This document shows, piece by piece, positions 1,066-46,665 of a DNA stretch of 64,000 nucleotides (positions are counted from its first letter, which is position 1; each line of letters opens with the position of its first letter). A model generated the notes under the pieces. It saw nothing but the letters and a program-made list of their open reading frames with translations, searched no databases and had not been told where the DNA came from. The translations under genes were made by a program, and so were the position numbers. The stretch spans positions 1 through 64,000 of the IMG/VR virus record IMGVR_UViG_3300028558_000016; one strand, given 5' to 3'.

Positions 1066-2487
1066 TTAAACAATTACATTATAGCCTTTGATCAAATCGT
1101 TGTACAATTCTTTACCATCGAAATCCATCATGTATCTCTTAGAGCTTTTTGGACCTCCGATGAAATCAAAGAAGAACCCTTGGTGCTTCTTCAACTTTCT
1201 TTCTACAACAAATCTCATTACTTTTGCTGCCAACTTCTTTCTCAAGTTGGTCGCAGTTTCATCGCCTCTGTCGGAAGCACATTCTCTTATAGAAGATATT
1301 TCATCACGAGTGAATCCCAGCTTCTCAAAATCAACTGTGTCGATCTCAGCGATGTCTTTCACGTGAGTCAATCCAAGCTTAGCAAGAACATCTGCTCTCA
1401 AACCTCTCGATTCAAAAGTGATTGCATCCTTGTGCTTTCTGTATTCAATGAACTCCTCGTAAGTGGAAATTTCAGAAGTCAACTTGTCAATTTCTTTTAA
1501 AGTTCTCTTCCATCCTTCTTGCAAGTGTTCAATCTCTTCTCCTCTTCCTGGGAAAGTCGCCTTGTATTCGTTCACGTTGTCCTCACCAGATCTAACGATG
1601 TCGATCAATCTCCAGAACGCAGTTGAGTCCTTGAAGAAGTGGATTGCACAGTAAGCTGGATTCTTCATTTTTACACGAGGGTATCCAAACTCAGTATGCT
1701 TTCCATAATCACAAACAACATAACCTTCCTCACGGTAAGTCATGCCATCGAAAGACTCTTTCAATTTATCTGGAGAAGAATTCAATGCAAGAGTTGGAGC
1801 CATTGGCACACCAAGATCTTTTGATATAATCTCAAGATCAACGAAAGAAACTTCTTCCAAAGTATCAAGCTTTCTTGCACCCAACAAATAGACAGCACTG
1901 TCTTGGTGTGGTGTAACAACAATGTTGTACTTAGTACAAAGCTCAAACGCCAAAGTATATCCATCATATTTCTTAAACAAAGCTTTTACCCACTCAGTTC
2001 TAAGATCACAATGTTCCATCATTCTCACATCGTCATCTTCTCTCTTAACAGTCTCCATGAAAGCGTGAACGAACAAATCCGAGAATGTTCCTCCAAGCTT
2101 AGTATAGTGAAAGTTATCCACATCACCTTCTCCGTTAGCAGTTCCAGTTGTTCCGAAGCAAACTTCTCCTGTAACGTAATCAGTGTAAACGTGAATCATT
2201 GTTCCATCCATCTTTTTGAAGATCCTTGCAGACTCCCAGTTTATAGGTGCTGCGTGTCCTTCTCCAAGGTTGAAGAATTTTCTGAATGCAATGGACATAA
2301 CTCTCCAAGTATCTTTCTCAACTACAAGTCCTCTCGCATCTCTAACTTCCTCGTTAGTGAAGTTGGATTCGATAGAATCGTACTTAAGCAATACCTTGTG
2401 AGGATAGTCCTTGTGCTTCAATTTGAAGTCAGCAAGAGTCTTCTCAAGACCGTGCTCTTTTAGGTATTTTGTTATTGCGAGTTCCAT
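1066..2487 (-). CDS. rnl1: T4 Rnl1-like RNA ligase with C-terminal extension
   Basis: EVRDARGLVVE, AFRKFFNLGE, motif I KMDGT, AFEL, EEGYVV, RVKMK. Confidence 0.85.
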   Translation of the reverse strand: MELAITKYLKEHGLEKTLADFKLKHKDYPHKVLLKYDSIESNFTNEEVRDARGLVVEKDTWRVMSIAFRKFFNLGEGHAAPINWESARIFKKMDGTMIHVYTDYVTGEVCFGTTGTANGEGDVDNFHYTKLGGTFSDLFVHAFMETVKREDDDVRMMEHCDLRTEWVKALFKKYDGYTLAFELCTKYNIVVTPHQDSAVYLLGARKLDTLEEVSFVDLEIISKDLGVPMAPTLALNSSPDKLKESFDGMTYREEGYVVCDYGKHTEFGYPRVKMKNPAYCAIHFFKDSTAFWRLIDIVRSGEDNVNEYKATFPGRGEEIEHLQEGWKRTLKEIDKLTSEISTYEEFIEYRKHKDAITFESRGLRADVLAKLGLTHVKDIAEIDTVDFEKLGFTRDEISSIRECASDRGDETATNLRKKLAAKVMRFVVERKLKKHQGFFFDFIGGPKSSKRYMMDFDGKELYNDLIKGYNVIV

Positions 2488-11900: not shown

Positions 11901-12288
11901 TTATTTCTTTATATTTTAAAATTATTAAATCTATATTTTTCGCTAATTCATCTTCTAAATTGCTTTCAAATACTATTGCCATGTTCTCGCAATATTTTCT
12001 GTAATTGTCTGCAAGAACTCCGGTCTCACACCAAGCTTTACATGATTCATAAAGCTCAATTATATCTGAATTAGGAATGTAATCCAGCACACCGTATCTG
12101 TCCTTATTAATATTATTCAAGTCTACCAACATTGTTTTTGCTGTGAATGTATCTTTCATTATCTTGCTTGCTGTGGCATCAATATTTGCTGCGGCTTCAG
12201 CCATCGTCTTGTCATCACCAAGCAAAACAGCCATTACTTGTTCCTGAGCATCCTGAAAGATCTTTTTTATTTTTTCTTCTTTTGTCAT
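11857..12288 (-). CDS. Hypothetical protein
   Basis: 143 aa ORF with ATGA overlap with the sigma gene. Confidence 0.6.
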   Translation of the reverse strand: MTKEEKIKKIFQDAQEQVMAVLLGDDKTMAEAAANIDATASKIMKDTFTAKTMLVDLNNINKDRYGVLDYIPNSDIIELYESCKAWCETGVLADNYRKYCENMAIVFESNLEDELAKNIDLIILKYKEINGNSTGLTNGETQA

Positions 12289-12914
12289 ATTTTTCTTCTT
12301 TCGTATTTCTTTCTAACTTTTTTAATATTTAACAGTACGTTTCTCTCTTCATCTATCATACGTTCCAGAACAGAATAAGACACTCCAAGTTCTTTTGCCA
12401 TGCTTGTTTTAGTCACATCTCCTTCTTCTCTTAATAATATTTTTAATGCTATAAACTTAGAGTCGTTTTTAATCTTGTATTTTGCTATGTCGAGTTTGTC
12501 TAATGACGTGTCATACTCTTTCATCATTAAATTTTTGATTTGAAATGGAACGTTTGAATCTATTCCAGCATATCTTCTGTAAATAGACAAGGTTTCATTT
12601 CCAGATAAATGCAAATTTATTTCATTACATCTATCATACTTAATATCATTCTTTATCCATTGAAGACATTCCATGTATGCTATAGTATGAAGCCATGTTG
12701 TAAATTTTGATTTCGTCTTATCGAATCCAGTCCGGTATAATATTAATTTTAAAAAAGTCTGTGATACAATGTCATCCGCTGCTATTGAACCAACTTTTTT
12801 AGAAGCAAATCTTTTAATTCTTGGTCCAAATATCAAAAATGCGTCTTCTATTAATTCAGATTTTTCGGAAATATTTTCCTGTATGTTTAATATTTTAAGC
12901 TTTTCATTCTTCAT
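12285..12914 (-). CDS. ECF-like RNA polymerase sigma factor
   Basis: ADDIVSQTFLKL, FDKTKSKFTTWLHTIA (region 2), C-terminal HTH MAKELGVS. Confidence 0.8.
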   Translation of the reverse strand: MKNEKLKILNIQENISEKSELIEDAFLIFGPRIKRFASKKVGSIAADDIVSQTFLKLILYRTGFDKTKSKFTTWLHTIAYMECLQWIKNDIKYDRCNEINLHLSGNETLSIYRRYAGIDSNVPFQIKNLMMKEYDTSLDKLDIAKYKIKNDSKFIALKILLREEGDVTKTSMAKELGVSYSVLERMIDEERNVLLNIKKVRKKYERRKI

Positions 12915-13290: not shown

Positions 13291-14475
13291 TTATATTGCA
13301 ATAGGCGCTTTAATCGCCGGGTGACTTTTGTATCCAACAAATTCAAAGTTCTCATACTTATATTCAATGATATGACCATTGTCACCATGCAAAGAGCTAT
13401 AAACTGTAGGTGGTTTTTTAAGTCTAAGCTTACATAATTCCATTGGCTCTCTATTTAATTGTTCATCGACTTGATCGAAATGATTTACGTATATGTGACA
13501 GTCTCCTCCGTTAAATACAAGCTCCTCAGGAACCATATTAACAGACTGAGCAATCATTTCCAATAACAATCCATAAGAAGCAATATTAAATGGCAATCCC
13601 AAAAACAAATCAACTGAACGTTGTTGCCACATTAGTGATATAGCACGTTTAGGAACATTCTGTTGGTCCAATTCAAAATCTTTCCAATCACTTTTATCTC
13701 CAGCCCAATTTTTAATGAACCACTCATTTCTTTCTTCTGTACTCATCTCACGCGTCCAACATTGGAATCCATAATGACATGGAGGAAGAAGCATCTTGTC
13801 TATCTCGGCAACGTTCCATGCATTCACCATCAATCGTCTTGAGTCTGGATTAGTCTTTAAGTCCTGTATCAAACGAAGTATTTGATCATACCACAGAGAA
13901 CCAAAGTCTTCTTTACCGGTATCTTCGTCCTCGTAATGCAACCATCCCTGCCACTGTCTCCATTGTTTTCCATAAACTGGTCCAAGCTCTCCCCATACAT
14001 CAGAAAATGAATCACGTGAAGCTGCAAACAATCCACTCAATTCGGATTCTTTTATTTTTTCAACAAACTCTTCTAATGTTAACGGAGGATGTTTTTCCAA
14101 TTGTTCTCTAATATATTTCACTGACATTGCATCTTCGGTTGTATCGGCTCTTCTAATAGAAGCCTCTAAGTCTTCTTTTAATTTTTCATGATGCTTCATG
14201 TAATTCTGCCAAGGCCATTCATTCCAAATGTTAACTCCATTGTCGACGAGATATTTTATGTTGTGTCCTCCTTGAAGGAACCACAGCAATTCATGGATGA
14301 CGCTTTTAGTGTGAATCTTCTTTGTCGTTAACAATGGAAATCCATCTTGCATGTTGAACTTTAAAGTTCGACCAAAAACAGAAACTGTTCCAGTTCCGGT
14401 TCTGTCAGATTTTCTAACTCCTTTTTCTCTAACTTCTTTTAAAAGATCGAGATATGCTTTATCTGTGTTGTTCAT
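13291..14475 (-). CDS. thyA: Thymidylate synthase with insertions
   Basis: DRTGTGT, FPLLTTKK, LGPVYGKQWR, NPDSRRL, LPPCH, QRSVDLFLGLPFNIASY. Confidence 0.97.
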   Translation of the reverse strand: MNNTDKAYLDLLKEVREKGVRKSDRTGTGTVSVFGRTLKFNMQDGFPLLTTKKIHTKSVIHELLWFLQGGHNIKYLVDNGVNIWNEWPWQNYMKHHEKLKEDLEASIRRADTTEDAMSVKYIREQLEKHPPLTLEEFVEKIKESELSGLFAASRDSFSDVWGELGPVYGKQWRQWQGWLHYEDEDTGKEDFGSLWYDQILRLIQDLKTNPDSRRLMVNAWNVAEIDKMLLPPCHYGFQCWTREMSTEERNEWFIKNWAGDKSDWKDFELDQQNVPKRAISLMWQQRSVDLFLGLPFNIASYGLLLEMIAQSVNMVPEELVFNGGDCHIYVNHFDQVDEQLNREPMELCKLRLKKPPTVYSSLHGDNGHIIEYKYENFEFVGYKSHPAIKAPIAI

Positions 14476-15035: not shown

Positions 15036-15896
15036 TTAAAATAATGTATGTATTGTTGGTTTAGTTTCTTTTTCGTTTATTACGTCAAAATTGTTAAAGA
15101 ACACTTCCTGGTTCTCAGTCTCATTTCTTCTTAATGGAGATATGTTTTGCAACATCTTAGTGTTGTACATATTCCATCCCAAAGCATCGTGAGTGTCACA
15201 AGCTATGTCAGTGTAAATAACACTTCCCTTTAATGGCTTAATTAAATCTATAAACTTGATCAAGTCATCTTCCTTTGAATACGTCTTTTGGTATCCAACC
15301 TCGCTTCTTACAAAATATGGTGGATCGAGAAAGAACAAAGAATCTTTTGTGTCGTTCTCTTTTATAACATCAACATAATCCTTGGAAACTATCTCAACGT
15401 TTAAATTCAAACGTCTATTAAGCTCTTTGAACGTTGGTTCATCCACGACAAAGAATCTGTTTCCATAAGATTGATTGAATCCATTAGGTCCAATCCTAAC
15501 GAGAGAGTTGATACATGAGTTCATAAGAAAATGGAACATGAAACCTTCAGTCACCAAGTCTTTGTTCTTCCCAAAGTATTCCTCGTTGAACCAATTTCTG
15601 AAATTGTAATAAGATTCCTTGTTTGATTTAATGTCACCAAATTTATTGAATACATCTTCTTTGATGGAAATATATTGGCTGTAAGTTCCGTCTCTAAAAG
15701 ATTTTACGGAATTGATCACGTGTGGATTTACATCGTTGATCACATATTTCTCGTATTCCTTTGTGAGGTTAAAGAATATTGCGCCTGAACCAAAGAAAGG
15801 TTCGACGTAAGTCTTCTTGTCCAACGCAGATGTTATCGCATTGAACTTCTCAATGAAGTGTATCTTTGAGCCTGCATATCGAGAAAATCTGTTCAT
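15036..15896 (-). CDS. dam: DNA adenine methyltransferase (Dam/D12 class)
   Basis: YAGSK, YVEPFFGSGAIF, INDVN, FLDPPY. Confidence 0.9.
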   Translation of the reverse strand: MNRFSRYAGSKIHFIEKFNAITSALDKKTYVEPFFGSGAIFFNLTKEYEKYVINDVNPHVINSVKSFRDGTYSQYISIKEDVFNKFGDIKSNKESYYNFRNWFNEEYFGKNKDLVTEGFMFHFLMNSCINSLVRIGPNGFNQSYGNRFFVVDEPTFKELNRRLNLNVEIVSKDYVDVIKENDTKDSLFFLDPPYFVRSEVGYQKTYSKEDDLIKFIDLIKPLKGSVIYTDIACDTHDALGWNMYNTKMLQNISPLRRNETENQEVFFNNFDVINEKETKPTIHTLF

Positions 15897-15937
15897 TACT
15901 TATTATATTAGCAATGAATGATCATGTTTCTAAAAAT

Positions 15938-15962
15938 AAAAAAGCCGCATTGCTGCGGCTTT
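15938..15962 (-). terminator. Intrinsic terminator
   Basis: AAAGCCGCA-GCAA-TGCGGCTTT followed by a T-run on the minus strand. Confidence 0.8.
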
Positions 15963-16090
15963 CTACGCTGATGTACATTCAGCTTCTAAGAACAGTTGTC
16001 TGACCATCTAAAGAGCACTCAGATAAATCTGTGCGCATGAATATCAGACCATTTCACCTATTATTGCAAGGTTTCAGGTAATCATAGTTC

Positions 16091-16885
16091 TTATTTTCTT
16101 TTTAGCACCCATAAGCAATTTCTTGCTTCTTCAGGGAAGAATGGTGCCATGATGTTTGCAACTAAATTTGAGTCATAATATTCTCTCAAACCGTCGAACA
16201 TCTTTTTTTGCCAATCATTTAATTTTGGCTTGTAGTGTGTTTGAGAAGCGAAAGTACCATACTTCTTTTCGATGGTGAAATATTTCTCAATGTGTGCTTG
16301 CAATTCTTTATGATCGAACTCATGCACAGCTTCTCCTCTTCCATCGCCTGAGTCATAAGTGTGATTTCCTGCTGCTCCAACCTTCTCATCATAATTTGGT
16401 GTAGATAAGTAATAAGTAGCATCATCGTTTCCGCATGCTCTGAAGTTCTCCAAGAAAGTGTCGATGTTTTGTTTTCCAACATGCTCAGCAACTTCAAACG
16501 AAATTACCTTGTCTGCTTGGATCTTGTCGTATGGGAACTTGTCAACGATCAAGTCAACCGCATGGAATTCTGCCCAAGGCACCCCAGCGAAATGCTCTCT
16601 TGCTGATTCAATGGTCTTCTTGCGAATATCCATTCCAACATACTTCTTGCATTTGAATTTATTTCTGTAGAATACCTCAAGAAGGCTTCCACCACCGCAA
16701 CCGAAATCTGCGATTGTTTCTCCTATTGTCGCTTGGTTTAATACATGCGTCCAACGAAGGTAATGTGCGAATTGATCTCTATGATAAACGTGCTTTTCAA
16801 AAGACGTTTGAGGATCAAGATCTGTTGTGTTGTATTTGCTCTTCTTTTTGGAAACAACAGCTTCCGTGTTTTCTTCTTTGCTCAT
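16091..16885 (-). CDS. Class I SAM-dependent methyltransferase
   Basis: IADFGCGGG, YVGMDI, SFEVAEHV, YLSTPN. Confidence 0.9.
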   Translation of the reverse strand: MSKEENTEAVVSKKKSKYNTTDLDPQTSFEKHVYHRDQFAHYLRWTHVLNQATIGETIADFGCGGGSLLEVFYRNKFKCKKYVGMDIRKKTIESAREHFAGVPWAEFHAVDLIVDKFPYDKIQADKVISFEVAEHVGKQNIDTFLENFRACGNDDATYYLSTPNYDEKVGAAGNHTYDSGDGRGEAVHEFDHKELQAHIEKYFTIEKKYGTFASQTHYKPKLNDWQKKMFDGLREYYDSNLVANIMAPFFPEEARNCLWVLKRK

Positions 16886-16967
16886 GGTAATTGATAGGTT
16901 TATTTTGCTAAATTAATAAAAATATATGATAACAGAAAGTATATTTTTCGAACAGTTTTACGAACAT

Positions 16968-17186
16968 TTATTCATCTATTTTGACGTCTCTCATTGTGAT
17001 TATCATGTACAAGGCCCAACCGACAACAGGCACATAGAACCATAGCCACCAGGAATTCCAAAATGCCACTGCGAGCACTGCTGGAATGATGCTACAACAA
17101 AATGCAAAAATTAATAATGCTAAAAGCTTTAATATCAGTTTCATGTTGTTTTTATTGTTGTTCTGTTTATGTTGTACTGAATCCAA
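16968..17186 (-). CDS. Small membrane protein
   Basis: Two hydrophobic segments; the start is probably the internal MKLIL. Confidence 0.55.
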   Translation of the reverse strand: MDSVQHKQNNNKNNMKLILKLLALLIFAFCCSIIPAVLAVAFWNSWWLWFYVPVVGWALYMIITMRDVKIDE

Positions 17187-18034
17187 GCAAGTGCCGCTTC
17201 TGGAATATCATCTATTATAGTTTGGCCTCTTTCTATTGCATCGTGAACTTCCAACATTTTAGGTGTCATTTTTCCTTTTTCATCGATCAAATCAATTACT
17301 ATTTCTGGAATGAAATCCTCATAGAATCCAACCAACAACATGTCTTCAACCACACTGAAATTCCTTTCGTATAGGTGCATTGAATTTACTTGATGCGTGT
17401 ATTTTCCAAGCTCAAGATCAGGATATTCCTTCTTTAATAAATGATACATCTGTTGTTGGAGCATAGTAAAGAATGCAACATCTGTTGGAAGACCAAGTAT
17501 TGCATCATTCGATCTCATCATCAAAGTGAAATCAAGCTTATTCTCTCTTATGTGAAATATTCCATTCAATGTGCAAACGAAATCCTTGTTTGCAAAATGC
17601 TGATGCGTAGGAAGGTTGAAGTGCATCAATGCTTGTCGAGTGTCTCTGTCTCTTTTTAAAGATTCGTAAGCCCATTCCCACTGAGTCATTCCATGTTCGT
17701 TCTTAGTATTGAACAATAAATGCCCGTATGCGCTGTTAACAGTTCCATCTGGATTTGCGATGTCCTTCCAGAATTTTGCATACTTCTGAATGTATTCCAA
17801 ATCATTTCTTCCAGCGAAATAGAACACAAGCTCTGCAGCAATGTATTTGTATTGTGAACCTCTTATTGAATTCCTGTACAGACCTGACATTGGATTTTCA
17901 ATCTCAAGCGTGACATTTAAAATCTCATTTATCTTCTGATCTCTTGGTGCACAAACATATTCAGGATTTGTCGATAAATCCTTTAAAAGATCTTTGTATA
18001 CTTTTGCAAACGATTCTCCTTTATAGCTTCTCAT
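17141..18034 (-). CDS. Thymidylate synthase-family paralogue, dCMP hydroxymethylase-like
   Basis: NSAYG, DTRQA, catalytic VCT, MRSND, and LPTDVAFF (Asp where ThyA has Asn). Confidence 0.8.
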   Translation of the reverse strand: MRSYKGESFAKVYKDLLKDLSTNPEYVCAPRDQKINEILNVTLEIENPMSGLYRNSIRGSQYKYIAAELVFYFAGRNDLEYIQKYAKFWKDIANPDGTVNSAYGHLLFNTKNEHGMTQWEWAYESLKRDRDTRQALMHFNLPTHQHFANKDFVCTLNGIFHIRENKLDFTLMMRSNDAILGLPTDVAFFTMLQQQMYHLLKKEYPDLELGKYTHQVNSMHLYERNFSVVEDMLLVGFYEDFIPEIVIDLIDEKGKMTPKMLEVHDAIERGQTIIDDIPEAALAWIQYNINRTTIKTT

Positions 18035-18657
18035 TTCTTCACTTTCTTTGGTTTCTTCACTTTCTTTGGTTTCTTCACTTTCTTTGGTTTCTTCACTTTC
18101 TTTGATTTAAACATCTTAAGATTAATTCCAATATTTTTTACTTCCTTAACAATGGAATCTGCTACATCGTACACATCTCCTTCTACAATCTCGTAGTGTA
18201 TATGGTTTTGGTCGAGATAATTTATTATTTTAGCATCAACAATTTTTGCCTGTTTGAGGGTTTGAGTTCTGCCGTTTGGATTATAATCTTTTCTTCTGTT
18301 TATGTAATAATTTACATTCTTGAATTTCTTATGTTCTGACAGAATTAATTTCTTAAAATCGTGATTGTCTTCTGGGCAATAAATCGATGAATGCAAAAGC
18401 GGAGCATCTGTTATCACAACTTCTAATTTGCCATCTAATCTTTGTAATCGATGTAATTGTTTTCCAAAAATGTATATTTGATGTTCGAGTTTCTTTAAGC
18501 TTTCTTCCCACACGATGTCCTTTGCATATTCAAGAGACATCTCGCAATCAATTCCAAGCATTTTAAGTTTCACGAAAAGAAGAGCGCATAACGTACTCTT
18601 GCCGCTTCCTGGCCCTGCGAAGAGATTAACTACCAATGTTTTCTTTTTTATCGCCAT
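18031..18657 (-). CDS. P-loop NTPase / nucleotide kinase-like (AAA_28-like) with KKPKKV tail
   Basis: VNLFAGPGSGKST, EYAKD, ITDAPL, GRTQT. Confidence 0.75.
   Translation of the reverse strand: MAIKKKTLVVNLFAGPGSGKSTLCALLFVKLKMLGIDCEMSLEYAKDIVWEESLKKLEHQIYIFGKQLHRLQRLDGKLEVVITDAPLLHSSIYCPEDNHDFKKLILSEHKKFKNVNYYINRRKDYNPNGRTQTLKQAKIVDAKIINYLDQNHIHYEIVEGDVYDVADSIVKEVKNIGINLKMFKSKKVKKPKKVKKPKKVKKPKKVKK
18035..18106. repeat. 18-bp tandem repeat x4 encoding KKPKKV
   Basis: Unit TTCTTCACTTTCTTTGGT; the last copy has one substitution. Confidence 0.95.
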
Positions 18658-18695: not shown

Positions 18696-18721
18696 AAAAA
18701 CCCACCAATTAAGGTGGGTTT
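18696..18721 (-). terminator. Intrinsic terminator
   Basis: AAACCCACC/GGTGGGTTT stem plus T-run on the minus strand, downstream of the portal gene. Confidence 0.75.
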
Positions 18722-18944
18722 CAAATTGTTTAACCGACTTATTATGGGTGATTCTCTTATTGACATATTCCCCAACATCATAGTCCGTAGATAGTCCGGT
18801 TAATTATCTTCCGTTACTGTAAACTATTTCATAGCTCAAGTAATATCTCTTTCTTACTTTTTTAGGTTTGGCCTGTTTCCTATTAACTGAACAACAAGCA
18901 AAACTAATTATCATAATCAACAATAAAAACTTTTTCATTATAGT

Positions 18945-20566: not shown

Positions 20567-21310
20567 TTATGCCGCTCCAGTTTGAGAGTCTTTAAAATCC
20601 TTCTGCTTCTTTTTAATTTCTTCCTTCTTTCTATCAGCAGAATTCTTAAGCTTCTCATTGAGGTTAACCTCAGGTGGATTCGTCATTCTTTTTATATATT
20701 CGTTGTATATCTCCTTAGGCTGTTTTCCAGTTATTCCTCTCGTGTACAAAGGTATCACAGAAACCCAGTCTTCATAGTCATATACAGCAGGACGCGCAAC
20801 GTTTCCTTTTTCGTATACAGAAAACGCTAATTGCCATCCTAATTTATCAAAAAGCTTCTTAGCGACATCGTAATTGAGTTTCAAGGCCTTTTTGCCTTTT
20901 CTTCCCTCGTTGATATTGGTTTGGTTTTCATTGATGTCCTTCTTGTATATTCTATACAATTGATCAAGGACGAACACCCTAATCTTTGGAGGCATCAGCA
21001 TGAAATCTATTCCAATCTCGTAAATTTTATTGTTTGCTTGACTCACCATCTGTCCGAGCGACAGCAATATTGGTCTCCTGTCGATCACAGGTCGTGCCTT
21101 GTTTGGAGTGTCTGTTGTGGCGTAAAGAAATGAATATATTTTTCCAGGAACAAAAAACTTCTCTTCAACCTTTTCCTTTCTTGGATGGTTGATCTTATCG
21201 TCCTTGGAATATTTGTCTATGTATAATTTAAAAGATTCGTCAGCCGCTTTGTCGAGGCCTCTTTTCTCATGTAAATAATCCTTCCAAATCTCAGAGGGTT
21301 TCTTCTCCAT
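20567..21310 (-). CDS. DNA end protector protein (T4 gp2-like)
   Basis: PGKIYSFLY, IDRRPILL, GIDFMLMPP; located next to portal and gp4. Confidence 0.6.
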   Translation of the reverse strand: MEKKPSEIWKDYLHEKRGLDKAADESFKLYIDKYSKDDKINHPRKEKVEEKFFVPGKIYSFLYATTDTPNKARPVIDRRPILLSLGQMVSQANNKIYEIGIDFMLMPPKIRVFVLDQLYRIYKKDINENQTNINEGRKGKKALKLNYDVAKKLFDKLGWQLAFSVYEKGNVARPAVYDYEDWVSVIPLYTRGITGKQPKEIYNEYIKRMTNPPEVNLNEKLKNSADRKKEEIKKKQKDFKDSQTGAA

Positions 21311-21932
21311 TTAGTTGTTGTACATTTGTTTGATCGTCGTGTCTGTCGCTTGCTTCAGATAATGTTCTTGGGAATTTATATTTTCCAGCATAGAAATCAT
21401 CGAATGCCATTCTCATCTTTCTTGCACATTCTATTGGAGATACATTTCCAACTCCAGTTCCAAGACCTGACATAACAACGCTGTTTATGGATTCATTCTT
21501 TCTCACTGCGAGAAATACTGCTCTTGCTGCAAGATATACGTTAGCCGACATTCTTGTTGCAGTAGCCAATCCCATGGAAACTCTCATTGTTGGAGCTGAT
21601 ATAAGATAAGGAAAATCCTTGTGATCTGTTGGAACTGTCAAAGACTGTCCAACCAATAATTCCCCGTCAAATTCGTCTACAATTTTTTGTTGAACTCTTT
21701 GCATCACATGCCATCCAAGTTCTTGCGAAAGATAGAAATCAATTCCACCATTCATGAATCCAAAACTGTTCGCTGGACTAACTATTGCATCGCATGGAAT
21801 ATCGAATATTGAACCTTTGTGAAAGATGAATTCCACTTTTGTCCCATCATAAATCGAAGTTTCTACATCTGAGAATGCTTCCTTCCAAGCTTCCACCATC
21901 GGTCCGCTTATGTCTGCTAATACTATTTTCAT
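21291..21932 (-). CDS. Macro domain protein (Appr-1''-p processing / ADP-ribosylhydrolase)
   Basis: DAIVSPANSFGFMNGGID, LISAPTMRV, SGLGTGVG. Confidence 0.9.
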   Translation of the reverse strand: MKIVLADISGPMVEAWKEAFSDVETSIYDGTKVEFIFHKGSIFDIPCDAIVSPANSFGFMNGGIDFYLSQELGWHVMQRVQQKIVDEFDGELLVGQSLTVPTDHKDFPYLISAPTMRVSMGLATATRMSANVYLAARAVFLAVRKNESINSVVMSGLGTGVGNVSPIECARKMRMAFDDFYAGKYKFPRTLSEASDRHDDQTNVQQLNGEETL

Positions 21933-37777: not shown

Positions 37778-37986
37778 TTGTCAAGTTTATATTTTTCGGT
37801 TAACCATCCTTTTAAAAACCACCCTGTAAAATATCCGCCAATTCCCGACATAATCCATCCGAGCCACATTGGATCTATTGGAGTTGCTATCACAAAAAGC
37901 GTAGCAATCAGAAATAGGAAAAACATATTTTTATATTGCCACTTCATTTTTTTAATTCGTTTGCAAATATTTGACGTTGAGCCCAA
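37765..37986 (-). CDS. Small membrane protein
   Basis: Hydrophobic ORF; start probably at MKWQY. Confidence 0.5.
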   Translation of the reverse strand: MGSTSNICKRIKKMKWQYKNMFFLFLIATLFVIATPIDPMWLGWIMSGIGGYFTGWFLKGWLTEKYKLDKWNR

Positions 37987-38972
37987 TGTCCATGTTTTAT
38001 CTCAAATCCTTTGCTAACGAACTTAGCAACTGATTTTCTGAATTCACCATAGGAAAATTCATCGGCAATCCTTATAACATATCCCTCACATTTATTTCCA
38101 TCAATCTCTGATTTAAACAATGTTTTTATTTTTTCTTCATCGAATATTCCTCTGTATAAAACTGGAACTGTATTAAGCCCAAGAAGCTCAGCATATTCTA
38201 AGGTCTCATCCCATGATAGACAAACATTCTTTTCGTTCCACATAGAAAACATGTAAAAATAACTTTCGAGATTCTTGTATGGAATTGTGTGTATTGCATA
38301 CATGTCCTCTCCACACAATCTCCATCCTTCAGGAATTTCATAAGCAATCTTTCCCCAAAGACCTTTCACCCATTTCTTAGATGGGTGAGAATTGTGTTCA
38401 AGAGATCTTGCGTGAATGTGATCTCTGTACATGGAAGTATTTTCCCCATCCAGCTTCACAGTCACAACAACTTCTTTTCCTTCAAAATGTTTTGTTGATT
38501 CTAATTTTCTGTCATCCTTGGTCATCTTCTCAGTCCATGGAAGATGCATTGTTCTCGGATATTTGACATACTTTGAAAACAGATCCAACACCTTTCCTTG
38601 CTCGAGAATCTTTTGGACTGACTCATCATAGAACAGTTCTCCTCTCACCCTTGTTCCATTCGGCATGATTAAATTTCCCCATTTGTCGTAGGTATAATCA
38701 TTGTCGTTGTACAGGTGTGATGGTAACACGACTTCCTTGATGCCCGTTGCCTCTCTGATTTCTTCGCAGGAAAGGGTGGTCTGTTCTGCCTCTATATGAT
38801 GCGTTTGACAAAGAGACGCACCGTTAGATAGGTAGTAACCTCCATCATCGAATAACCTTCTTTCAATTATGTGATGAGCATCTTTTGCTGGTTGTTTGCA
38901 TATAACACATTGATGGGAATCCCTTTTAAAGACTCCCTCTCTGAATTCATCTCGTGTTAATAGCTTTTCCAT
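37944..38972 (-). CDS. RNA ligase family protein with N-terminal HNH-like domain
   Basis: N-terminus CVIC..DAHHI..NGASLC..HH; C-terminus KYPRTMHLPW, KLDGEN, GEDMY, EGYVIR, AKFV. Confidence 0.8.
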   Translation of the reverse strand: MEKLLTRDEFREGVFKRDSHQCVICKQPAKDAHHIIERRLFDDGGYYLSNGASLCQTHHIEAEQTTLSCEEIREATGIKEVVLPSHLYNDNDYTYDKWGNLIMPNGTRVRGELFYDESVQKILEQGKVLDLFSKYVKYPRTMHLPWTEKMTKDDRKLESTKHFEGKEVVVTVKLDGENTSMYRDHIHARSLEHNSHPSKKWVKGLWGKIAYEIPEGWRLCGEDMYAIHTIPYKNLESYFYMFSMWNEKNVCLSWDETLEYAELLGLNTVPVLYRGIFDEEKIKTLFKSEIDGNKCEGYVIRIADEFSYGEFRKSVAKFVSKGFEIKHGHWAQRQIFANELKK

Positions 38973-44994: not shown

Positions 44995-46665
44995 TTACCA
45001 ATCTCCTGAAGCACCACCGCCGGATGAACTTCCACCGCCAAAATCTGAACTTGAACTTGAAGATGAACTGCTCGAAGAACTTGAGCTTGACATTGATGAA
45101 TACAATGCTGCTTGTCTTCTTCTTTCTTCTTCGGCTTCTTCCTCTCTTTTCCTTCTTCGTTTTCTTTCCTCTTCTTCGATGTCATCGTCAGCTTTACGTT
45201 TAACAGAATCAAGATCACTTATTAAAGCATACATCTCGCTGTAAGCAATCAATGGATTATTTGCTTCTCTGTACATTGCTGCTTTAGATTCAACCGTTCT
45301 AAATTTTGATTTAGTCGTGGATGAAACGTCACTATTTCCAATTCTTCGTTTAACATCATTAAGCAATGAATTTATTCTGCTTCTATTGGTTGATACATAT
45401 TTAACTGCATCAGATATTTTGTTTAACCTATCGTCGACAACTTTTAAGTGACCTTTTATTTCTCTTTCTGAGGTTTGAATCGAATGAAAATTCATCTTAC
45501 ATTCATCGTACTTTTCCATTGTAGACTCATTGATCTTATGTTGTAACTTCAATAAGGCATTATGCATATCGCTAAGCTTATTAATAAGCATCTTTTCTGG
45601 AAAGGCAATCTCAATAACACTGCTTGAATAGGTTGAAACCATTCTGGTGTAATTGGCATTGGTGTTCGTTATCGCTGCATTAATTTCCTGTGTGGTCTTG
45701 TAATAAGAATTGATGGAAGCTTTCAGAGTATTAAACTCTGTAAATCTAACATAAACAGCTCTTATAGATTCCAATAACGCAGATGAAATATTACGTATCA
45801 AAAGCTGTTCAGACTCCATCGACTCGATAGAAAGATTTCTTTGCGTAAGCAAATCATCCAATTTTCTTTTAGCCTCGTCATATTTGCTTAAGTCTGCAGT
45901 GAACACTGTTTTATTTTCCTTAGCCCACGCCAGCATCTTATTGTAATCATTTATAGAACTGTTATTATCGGATGTTAGTTTTTCCAATTTCATCTTCTTT
46001 TCTCTGGCCTCAGCAGCAATCTTCTCCTTTTTCCTTTTGTCAGTTATGTATAACACGATTAATGCAGCAATTGCAGCTCCTATAATTCCAAACCACGTGA
46101 AGAAAGTTACAAGACCATCGTTGAATGCTTGTTTGTCTTTTTCCATTTGTTCGGCCTGTTTTCTTTTAAGGTCTTTTCTTTCTTGCCACGACAACGGTCC
46201 AAGCTTCGTAGTGAAATCGTCTATGAGAGCATTAAAACCTGCTGTATAATTTTTCTGCTTAAGAAATGGAACCAATTTAGATTGTGCCTCGGTTCTTGCA
46301 TAACCATCCGTGATATATTCCTCAAGACCATCACCAACCTCTATTCTCCATTTTCTATCCGTAACAGATATGAGCATCAACAATCCATTGTTTAATTCTT
46401 TGGTTCCTATCCCCCATGCTCTAAATAACTCATTAGAATAAGAATCAACATCCTTGCCATCAAGAGACATAATAGTAACAATGGTCATTTCAATGGAAGA
46501 TTTATTTTTAAAATCTCTTATCTTCTTATCGAGAAGAGGTTCATCTGCATCATCGATGACATTTGCGAAATCGTTGACATACGTGTCAGTCTTATGCTCA
46601 GGCAAAGTCTGAGAATAAGTGTTCATCCATAAAATGGAAATAAATAGTACTAATGCTTTTTTCAT
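44995..46665 (-). CDS. TPM domain membrane protein with coiled coil and Ser/Gly-rich tail
   Basis: YVNDFANVI, WGIGTKELNNGLLMLIS, RIEVGDGLE, TM segment, C-terminal FGGGSSSGGGASGDW. Confidence 0.88.
   Translation of the reverse strand: MKKALVLFISILWMNTYSQTLPEHKTDTYVNDFANVIDDADEPLLDKKIRDFKNKSSIEMTIVTIMSLDGKDVDSYSNELFRAWGIGTKELNNGLLMLISVTDRKWRIEVGDGLEEYITDGYARTEAQSKLVPFLKQKNYTAGFNALIDDFTTKLGPLSWQERKDLKRKQAEQMEKDKQAFNDGLVTFFTWFGIIGAAIAALIVLYITDKRKKEKIAAEAREKKMKLEKLTSDNNSSINDYNKMLAWAKENKTVFTADLSKYDEAKRKLDDLLTQRNLSIESMESEQLLIRNISSALLESIRAVYVRFTEFNTLKASINSYYKTTQEINAAITNTNANYTRMVSTYSSSVIEIAFPEKMLINKLSDMHNALLKLQHKINESTMEKYDECKMNFHSIQTSEREIKGHLKVVDDRLNKISDAVKYVSTNRSRINSLLNDVKRRIGNSDVSSTTKSKFRTVESKAAMYREANNPLIAYSEMYALISDLDSVKRKADDDIEEEERKRRRKREEEAEEERRRQAALYSSMSSSSSSSSSSSSSSSDFGGGSSSGGGASGDW

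Follow-up and report, generated by a model that had tools for sequence, protein, structure and literature searches.

A predicted 5-hydroxymethylcytosine pathway with a linked Hen1-like methyltransferase in a 482-kb soil phage

A thymidylate synthase (TS) paralogue placed between a nucleotide kinase and a methyltransferase raises the question of which modified base, if any, these genes introduce into the DNA of a phage. The locus is found in the window analysed here, the 64,000 nucleotides that form the first 64 kb of a 482-kb T4-like huge phage from rhizosphere metagenomes (IMG/VR record IMGVR_UViG_3300028558_000016). The first-pass annotation had proposed a kinase, a dCMP-type TS paralogue and a SAM methyltransferase, with a possible Dam, as a cytosine-modification module making 5hmC, 5mC or a further methylated derivative. 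All these genes were confirmed at their coordinates on the - strand, and the inference of a dCMP-specific TS paralogue making a modified dC, with the kinase and the methyltransferase as partners, was supported by all the tests that could be run. However, Dam is not part of the module, 5mC is the less likely product, and the Hen1-like character of the methyltransferase makes O-methylation the leading guess.

The TS paralogue (17141-18034, -, 297 aa) matches the profile PF00303 at 1.2e-20 (74.2 bits against a cut-off of 24.3). The genome also encodes a canonical ThyA (13291-14475, -, 394 aa) that supplies dTMP and matches PF00303 from end to end (1.1e-95). The paralogue reads MRSNDAILGLPTDVAFF where ThyA reads QQRSVDLFLGLPFNIASY. 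The best solved relatives of the paralogue are the CMP hydroxymethylase MilA (3e-20) and T4 gp42 (4e-14), and it is only about 30% identical to the gp42 of T4-like Aeromonas phages. In E. coli numbering, the catalytic residue Cys146 is present (KDFVCT aligns with SDFMCT of T4). Asn177 of ThyA (LPFNIASY) is replaced by Asp (LPTDVAFF), in the same column as Asp179 of T4 gp42 in the HMMER and MAFFT alignments, and Asp at this site gives cytosine specificity (PMC13326640, PMC8670742). Leu143 is also replaced by Asp, as in T4 gp42 and SPO1 gp29 in our alignment and in MilA according to PMC13326640; an acidic residue at this position, which admits water, correlates with hydroxymethyl products (PMC13326640). 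The residues Ser167 and Arg126 (MRSND and DTRQ in the alignment with MilA) are of the deoxyribose type, whereas MilA and BcmA have Ala and Lys (PMC5175136). Finally, Asp169 is kept, contrary to the 5-hydroxy-dCMP synthases of RB69, DLP3 and RL38JI (NAR 2026), which share Asp177, an acidic residue at position 143 and a dNMP kinase partner but carry the diagnostic change D169N; no arabinosyl- or glycosyl-transferase cluster was seen here either. The residues are therefore those of a dCMP hydroxymethylase, and not those of a 5-hydroxy-dCMP synthase or of a MilA-type CMP enzyme, and we predict that the paralogue is a 5hm-dCMP synthase.

The stop of the kinase gene (18031-18657, -, 208 aa) overlaps the TS start as ATGA. 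The protein displays the P-loop GPGSGKST and a C-terminal Lys-rich (KKVKKP)n tail, and matches Pfam AAA_28 (8e-07) and phrog_2107 "thymidylate kinase" (7e-14). It does not reach the cut-off of the Thymidylate_kin profile, and no PDB sequence match was found at E of 1 or below. Nevertheless, the best folds matching its AF2 model (pLDDT 91.8) are thymidylate kinases, including those of Thermus and Brugia, and the NadR kinase domain, with TM of 0.68-0.73. Kinases of the AAA_28 family also sit next to or near the TS homologue in three relatives, designated L005, L007 and L021. This enzyme is thus proposed to be the kinase for the modified dCMP.

The methyltransferase (16091-16885, -, 264 aa) belongs to class I of the SAM-dependent enzymes (Methyltransf_12/25/11/23). 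With a profile of its family, the five best PDB hits are all Hen1 2'-O-methyltransferases (1.8e-7 to 2.4e-5), with shared DFGCG, EVxEH and STPN motifs. The SAM loop DFGCG is found at residues 60-64, and the residues E131, E134 and H135, invariant in 36 homologues, align with the metal-binding motif EVIEH of Hen1. The similarity is limited to the catalytic core, and the score against TIGR04074 is far below the family cut-off (26.5 versus 340 bits), indicating a related family and not a Hen1 orthologue. In addition, structural searches gave a flat list of small-molecule methyltransferases, both N- and O-methylating.

The linkage of this methyltransferase with the TS paralogue is the new result. 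Of the 80 IMG/VR loci that hold a homologue of the methyltransferase, 77 have a TS with Asp143, Asp169 and Asp177 on the same strand, at most about 3.6 kb downstream, and the three exceptions are cut at most about 1.1 kb after the gene. These TS proteins form 21 clusters at 90% identity and 13 at 70%. The usual order is DUF6378, methyltransferase, MazG-like, dCMP deaminase and TS, which is the backbone described for the 5hmC carbamoyltransferase clusters (MetaGPA study, eLife 2021; for example Xanthomonas phage Xp15). In these clusters, however, the enzyme decorating the 5-CH2OH group is a NolO/TobZ-type carbamoyltransferase. Homologues of the methyltransferase are also carried by the GenBank phages AXL3, PW916, MW202510 and MW202621. 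The three loci inspected (AXL3, MW202510 and MW202621) show methyltransferase, NTP-PPase, TS and dCMP deaminase, with an annotated kinase in AXL3 and MW202510. Stenotrophomonas phage AXL3 is a cultured siphovirus of 47.5 kb and 63% GC, with a separate ThyX for dTMP; in its gp27-gp31 region the methyltransferase is 31% identical to ours, the TS is of the Asp177 type and the kinase is not detectably similar to that of the window. The DNA of AXL3 resists 35 of 37 restriction enzymes and is cut only at AT-only sites, although its modification has not been identified chemically. In one 193-kb phage, the methyltransferase is flanked by a SAH hydrolase and a SAM synthetase, which fits a bulk demand for methyl groups.

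Taken as a whole, these data suggest, with moderate confidence, a pathway working before replication, in which every chemical step is inferred, above all the atom that is methylated. The TS paralogue would convert dCMP into 5-hydroxymethyl-dCMP with methylene-tetrahydrofolate and water, as T4 gp42 does, the coupled kinase would phosphorylate this nucleotide so that it reaches the triphosphate pool and is built into DNA, and the probably metal-dependent methyltransferase would cap the new hydroxyl, on the nucleotide or on DNA, to give 5-methoxymethyl-cytosine. The methyltransferase would thus take the place held by glucosyl-, arabinosyl- or carbamoyl-transferases in other phages, the likely purpose being protection from restriction and from enzymes that recognise plain 5hmC. 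As in the T4 pathway (gp42, gp1 dNMP kinase, gp56 dCTPase, cd deaminase and alpha/beta-glucosyltransferases), the genome holds a dedicated nucleotide kinase, a separate canonical TS, a dCMP deaminase located elsewhere, a Dam gene nearby and a T4-like virion and replication gene set. It also holds a dUTPase-family gene and DUF6378 elsewhere. No glycosyltransferase was found among the 30 window ORFs scanned with Pfam, and tblastn detected no relative of T4 beta-GT, of a Lactobacillus-phage GT, of the Xp15 carbamoyltransferase or of gp56 in the 482-kb genome. There were no MazG or MazG-like profile hits either, so full replacement of C is not assured. More tentatively, the reading could extend to the whole methyltransferase family, which comprises over 1,200 proteins at E of 1e-5 or below in a word-based protein search and is found on at least 263 IMG/VR contigs from gut, soil and other sampled habitats; these phages would then carry 5-methoxymethyl-cytosine in place of C, a natural base not named in any paper of the library searched. 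Phage DNA hypermodifications defeat restriction enzymes and have given reagents such as 5hmC glucosyl- and carbamoyl-transferases and 5mC-selective deaminases. If a methyltransferase always travels with dCMP hydroxymethylases, this suggests a third and very compact way to cap 5hmC, with effects on the behaviour of these genomes in sequencing and in restriction-based methods, and the enzyme could become a simple SAM-dependent tag for 5hmC.

Among the alternatives, it remains possible, although unlikely, that the methyltransferase modifies another atom of the cytosine nucleotide, for example N4, giving a doubly modified base such as N4-methyl-5-hydroxymethyl-cytosine. The linkage only indicates that the enzyme works with the TS product and not where it methylates, and the best structural matches include the tetrahydroprotoberberine and phosphoethanolamine N-methyltransferases. 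On the other hand, the closest sequence family is the O-methyltransferase Hen1, with its ExxEH motif invariant, no (D/N/S)PP(Y/F) motif of the kind seen in amino-methyltransferases is visible in the sequence, and the enzyme takes the cluster position of transferases acting on the 5-CH2OH oxygen.

Slightly less likely is a TS paralogue acting as a dCMP methylase, as in Xp12 and PaMx74, the DNA then carrying 5-methylcytosine and the methyltransferase adding something else or serving another purpose. Asp177 alone also fits dCMP methylases, five deaminase-linked Asp177 TS homologues from metaviromes made 5mdC when tested, and the small-phage clusters share with PaMx74 the backbone NTP-PPase, TS and deaminase. 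However, PaMx74 gp52, the only 5mC-phage enzyme compared, has Asn three residues before the catalytic Cys (NVPC) and a TS-like C-terminal tail, with a DHFR gene close by in the same gene row. The window enzyme (DFVC) and all the methyltransferase-linked TS homologues have Asp at this position. The window protein has an unrelated C-terminal extension, and the short homologues end right after the HxY motif, as gp42 does. The Asp143 rule is nevertheless a correlation, which separates the window enzyme from that of PaMx74 by Asp versus Asn only.

It is doubtful that the methyltransferase is a true Hen1-type RNA 3'-end 2'-O-methyltransferase, working in RNA repair and placed beside the TS gene only by genome layout. 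Hen1 is its best solved relative and the window encodes Rnl1-like and Rnl2-like RNA ligases, but the linkage to an Asp177 TS is essentially 77 of 77 across at least 13 TS clusters and several phage types, in gene neighbourhoods where no RNA ligase or Pnkp was seen, and the protein has no RNA-binding or Pnkp-interacting domain. Lastly, a free modified pyrimidine or nucleoside, made along MilA or bacimethrin lines, is very unlikely: MilA is the top solved hit of the TS paralogue and bacimethrin synthesis probably uses a TS homologue, a methyltransferase and a kinase, but Ser167 and Arg126 are of the deoxyribose type, no N-glycosidase was seen, the predicted fold of the kinase is that of thymidylate kinases and not of ThiD, and the partner genes in other phages are dCMP deaminase, MazG and DNA polymerase.

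Two details absent from the first-pass annotation concern the limits and content of the module. A 58-codon ORF (16968-17144, -), whose ATG overlaps the TS stop, lies between the TS gene and the methyltransferase gene; it encodes a small hydrophobic two-helix protein, conserved at the same place in L021 and in two further relatives, L034 and L035, with 40-51% identity. A terminator-like hairpin (15939-15964, -; 11-bp stem with 5 G-C pairs, then a T run) follows the methyltransferase gene and marks the likely end of the kinase-TS-methyltransferase transcription unit, before Dam. Another hairpin followed by a T run (18698-18721, -) lies between the portal gene, plus a 44-codon ORF, and the kinase gene; it is the likely terminator of the upstream unit, so the module probably starts its own transcript. 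The Dam-like gene (15036-15896, -, 286 aa) encodes a D12-class N6-adenine DNA methyltransferase with the DPPY motif (FLDPPYF) and matches PF02086 at 2.7e-25 (90 bits against a cut-off of 22), whereas its score against TIGR00571 (104.8 bits) is just under the cut-off of 114.85. This gene is a neighbour of the module: it is lacking in the relative L004, and L021 and L035 carry in that place a D12 gene that is only 27% identical.

The virus record, of 482,156 bp, is rated complete by CheckV. The GC content is about 36% and nearly all the genes lie on the - strand. The gene content is T4-like, with a gp20-type portal, a gp15-type sheath stabiliser, a gp44-type clamp loader, a gp46/47-type nuclease, a DnaB-type helicase, a DNA ligase and two RNA ligases. 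The latter, one Rnl1-like (PF09511) and one Rnl2-like (PF09414), are located at positions 1066-2487 (-) and 37944-38972 (-) and point to an RNA repair capacity, as in T4. A megablast search of the region against 50,697 phage records found nothing, and relatives exist only at the protein level. The same DNA occurs, letter for letter, in contigs of several rhizosphere metagenome runs from different studies; the public runs hold the phage only as such assembled contigs, which give no information on base modification or expression.

The first-pass annotation had proposed a candidate cytosine-modification module composed of a kinase, a dCMP-type thymidylate synthase (TS) paralogue and a SAM methyltransferase, possibly with Dam. 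The observation is confirmed and its interpretation is supported, except that Dam probably lies outside the unit. The - strand contains a 208-aa P-loop kinase (18031-18657), a 297-aa TS-family protein (17141-18034), a 264-aa class I SAM methyltransferase (16091-16885) and a 286-aa D12-class adenine methyltransferase (15036-15896). A canonical ThyA is found at 13291-14475 (-), and the TS paralogue reads LPTDVAFF where ThyA reads LPFNIASY. ThyA has 394 aa yet covers the 266-position Pfam profile end to end, and so carries about 130 extra residues in inserts; relatives have versions of 408-432 aa, and in L035, a locus from a close relative, the gene appears in two ORFs. The stop of the kinase gene and the start of the TS paralogue overlap as ATGA. 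A 58-codon ORF for a small two-helix hydrophobic membrane protein (16968-17144, -) is coupled in the same way to the stop of the paralogue, and it is conserved at the same place in the three close relatives L021, L034 and L035 (40-51% identity). A hairpin with an 11-bp stem and a T run (15939-15964) follows the methyltransferase gene and precedes Dam, whereas another hairpin with a T run (18698-18721) precedes the kinase gene. Between the portal gene and this second hairpin, a 44-codon ORF (18804-18938, -) displays a signal-peptide/lipobox-like start (ISFACCS) and is conserved in L034 (59% identity). The likely unit is therefore kinase, TS paralogue, small ORF and methyltransferase. The T4 late promoter motif TATAAATA is not enriched.

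The best solved relatives of the TS paralogue are MilA, a CMP 5-hydroxymethylase (3e-20), and the T4 dCMP hydroxymethylase (4e-14), ahead of true thymidylate synthases. Following the residue scheme set out in PMC13326640 and PMC8670742, the protein contains the catalytic Cys146, Asp in place of Asn177 (cytosine rather than uracil) and Asp in place of Leu143, the position that correlates with hydroxymethyl rather than methyl products. It keeps Asp169, whereas every tested 5-hydroxy-dCMP synthase has Asn at this position. To test the alternative of 5mC as the product, we examined the TS homologue of phage PaMx74, which replaces C with 5mC according to a 2024 preprint. This protein has Asn, not Asp, three residues before the Cys and keeps a TS-like C-terminal tail, and a DHFR gene sits close by in the same gene row; our protein differs on the first two counts. 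The comparison favours hydroxymethylation but rests on one reference enzyme and a one-atom difference, and the same preprint shows that other deaminase-linked Asp177 homologues make 5mdC, and a hydroxymethylase activity is considered probable rather than established. The choice between ribose and deoxyribose rests, in the study of MilA (PMC5175136), on Ala176/Lys133 in MilA against Ser/Arg in T4 gp42 and TS, and our protein has Ser (MRSND) and Arg (DTRQ); it should therefore use dCMP, not CMP.

Concerning the kinase, Pfam detects only AAA_28, PHROGs names the family thymidylate kinase, and no PDB sequence relative was found at an E-value of 1 or below. A confident structural model (pLDDT 91.8) best matches thymidylate kinases, along with the NadR kinase domain, with a TM-score up to 0.73. 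Homologues are common in huge phages. In two loci of relatives whose TS paralogue is 50-54% identical (L005 and L007), an AAA_28 kinase again lies just upstream, no homologue of the methyltransferase was detected, and an epimerase-like gene lies downstream in L005. The kinase and the TS paralogue thus look like the stable core, with an exchangeable tailoring gene. In L035 the kinase homologue (1118-1619) is split into two adjacent frames, by either a frameshift or an assembly error. The kinase studied here ends in a Lys-rich tail (18031-18130, -) in which KKVKKP is repeated about four times. This tail is peculiar to the copy of this phage, and it might bind nucleic acid; a kinase acting on DNA cannot be excluded.

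The main result is the linkage of the methyltransferase. A word-based protein search recovered 1,257 homologues at an E-value of 1e-5 or below. In the GenBank phages with a homologue whose loci were inspected (AXL3, MW202510 and MW202621), the gene belongs to the row methyltransferase, NTP pyrophosphatase, TS homologue and dCMP deaminase, with an annotated kinase in the first two. In metagenomic contigs the row is usually DUF6378, methyltransferase, MazG-like, dCMP deaminase and TS, and a group of gut phages has a dUTPase-family gene in between. Three loci (L011-L013) come from samples labelled human gut metagenome; they are phage contigs, with primase, helicase, dUTPase and TS genes, and none was taken for human DNA. 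A close relative of our phage has exactly the same order, namely portal, kinase, TS, methyltransferase, D12 methyltransferase, two small ORFs and ThyA. A scan of IMG/VR detected 263 contigs with a homologue. Of the 80 loci kept, 77 contain a TS homologue on the same strand, at most about 3.6 kb downstream, and the other three end at most about 1.1 kb after the methyltransferase. Every one of these TS proteins has Asp143, Cys146, Asp169 and Asp177, and they fall into 21 clusters at 90% identity, 13 at 70% and 3 at 50%. The IMG/VR contigs L028-L032 (5-53 kb) carry a methyltransferase 89% identical to ours, paired with a short TS (about 218 aa) of a quite different type, which suggests a recent exchange of the methyltransferase gene between small phages and this huge phage. 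The methyltransferase therefore moves between phage lineages and works with unrelated TS partners, which argues that it recognises the common product rather than a partner protein. In a 193-kb phage contig (L014, 4557-8021), the homologue is flanked by SAH hydrolase and SAM synthetase, as expected if methyl groups are needed in bulk, with no TS gene within 6 kb. The only physical datum is that the DNA of AXL3 resisted 35 of 37 restriction enzymes and was cut only at AATT and TTAA, which fits a modification of G or C.

The DUF6378 protein (about 90 aa) is the usual upstream partner in small phages. It occurs in 75 of the 88 loci examined (for example L022, 3249-3518, and L026, 5518-5787) and is directly upstream of the methyltransferase in most of the representative loci. 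It has no solved relative and is not related to the two 93-aa ORFs beside Dam. In the genome studied here, this domain (264059-264292) forms the N-terminus of a 313-aa protein far from the module.

Searches with the single methyltransferase sequence gave weak hits to UbiG, cyclopropane synthases and bacterial Hen1. A profile built from 36 family members found Hen1 as the five best solved matches, from 3jwg (1.8e-7) to plant HEN1 3htx (2.4e-5), with an alignment that covers DFGCGxG, the block (F/L)EVxEH and STPN. In plant HEN1, the Glu, Glu and His of EVIEH, together with His860, hold the Mg2+ that binds the hydroxyl to be methylated (PMC10781085). The corresponding residues E131, E134 and H135 are invariant in the phage family, whereas the counterpart of the fourth ligand could not be placed. 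The score against the Hen1 family model is far below its cut-off. Fold searches do not single out Hen1, Foldseek and VIA-align giving a flat list of class I methyltransferases (TM about 0.5, Z 17-18) that cannot separate N- from O-methylation, and the ESM Atlas gave only generic names. The enzyme represents a related family and not a Hen1. It occupies the cluster position held elsewhere by a beta-glucosyltransferase (Lactobacillus phage ATCCB), by a carbamoyltransferase (Xp15 and the MetaGPA clusters) or by the T4 glucosyltransferases, all of which act on the 5-CH2OH oxygen. Together with the Hen1 motif, this makes O-methylation of 5hmC the most economical reading. No paper was found in the searched library on methoxymethyl-cytosine or on a methyltransferase partner of dCMP hydroxymethylase.

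The TS paralogue and the kinase are of types already known. What is new is the tight and widespread coupling to a Hen1-like methyltransferase, which differs from the tailoring of 5hmC by sugar or carbamoyl groups and whose product is not known. It is likely that these three genes together make a C5-modified cytosine for the phage DNA. The full pathway as proposed is about as likely as not, and 5-methoxymethyl-cytosine as its product remains tentative.

Elsewhere in the genome we detected a dCMP deaminase (449795-450115) and one dUTPase-family gene (236007-236417), 45% identical to the one inside the gut-phage cluster. Searches for MazG, MazG-like and T4 gp56 proteins were all negative, leaving the dUTPase-family gene as the only candidate dCTPase, and without a recognisable dCTPase the full replacement of C cannot be asserted. 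No relative of the glucosyl- or carbamoyl-transferases tried was found, nor were SAH hydrolase and SAM synthetase found by tblastn.

Dam is a D12-class enzyme with the motif DPPY. The relative L004 lacks it between the methyltransferase and ThyA, whereas L021 (4113-4982) and L035 (3848-4402) have at this place a D12 gene that is only 27% identical, although their Hen1-like methyltransferase is 85-90% identical and the flanking genes are 60-90% identical. The slot looks like a swappable cassette, and Dam is a variable neighbour, probably for adenine methylation, that is not part of the cytosine pathway. Also on the - strand, a sigma-70 region-2 protein (a possible phage sigma factor) is encoded at 12285-12914 and a 556-aa protein with a TPM phosphatase domain at 44995-46665. 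Finally, a macro-domain protein (21291-21932, -; PF01661, phrog_2613) lies two genes from the portal gene, after a 247-aa ORF (20567-21310), and is a possible ADP-ribose-related counter-defence gene.
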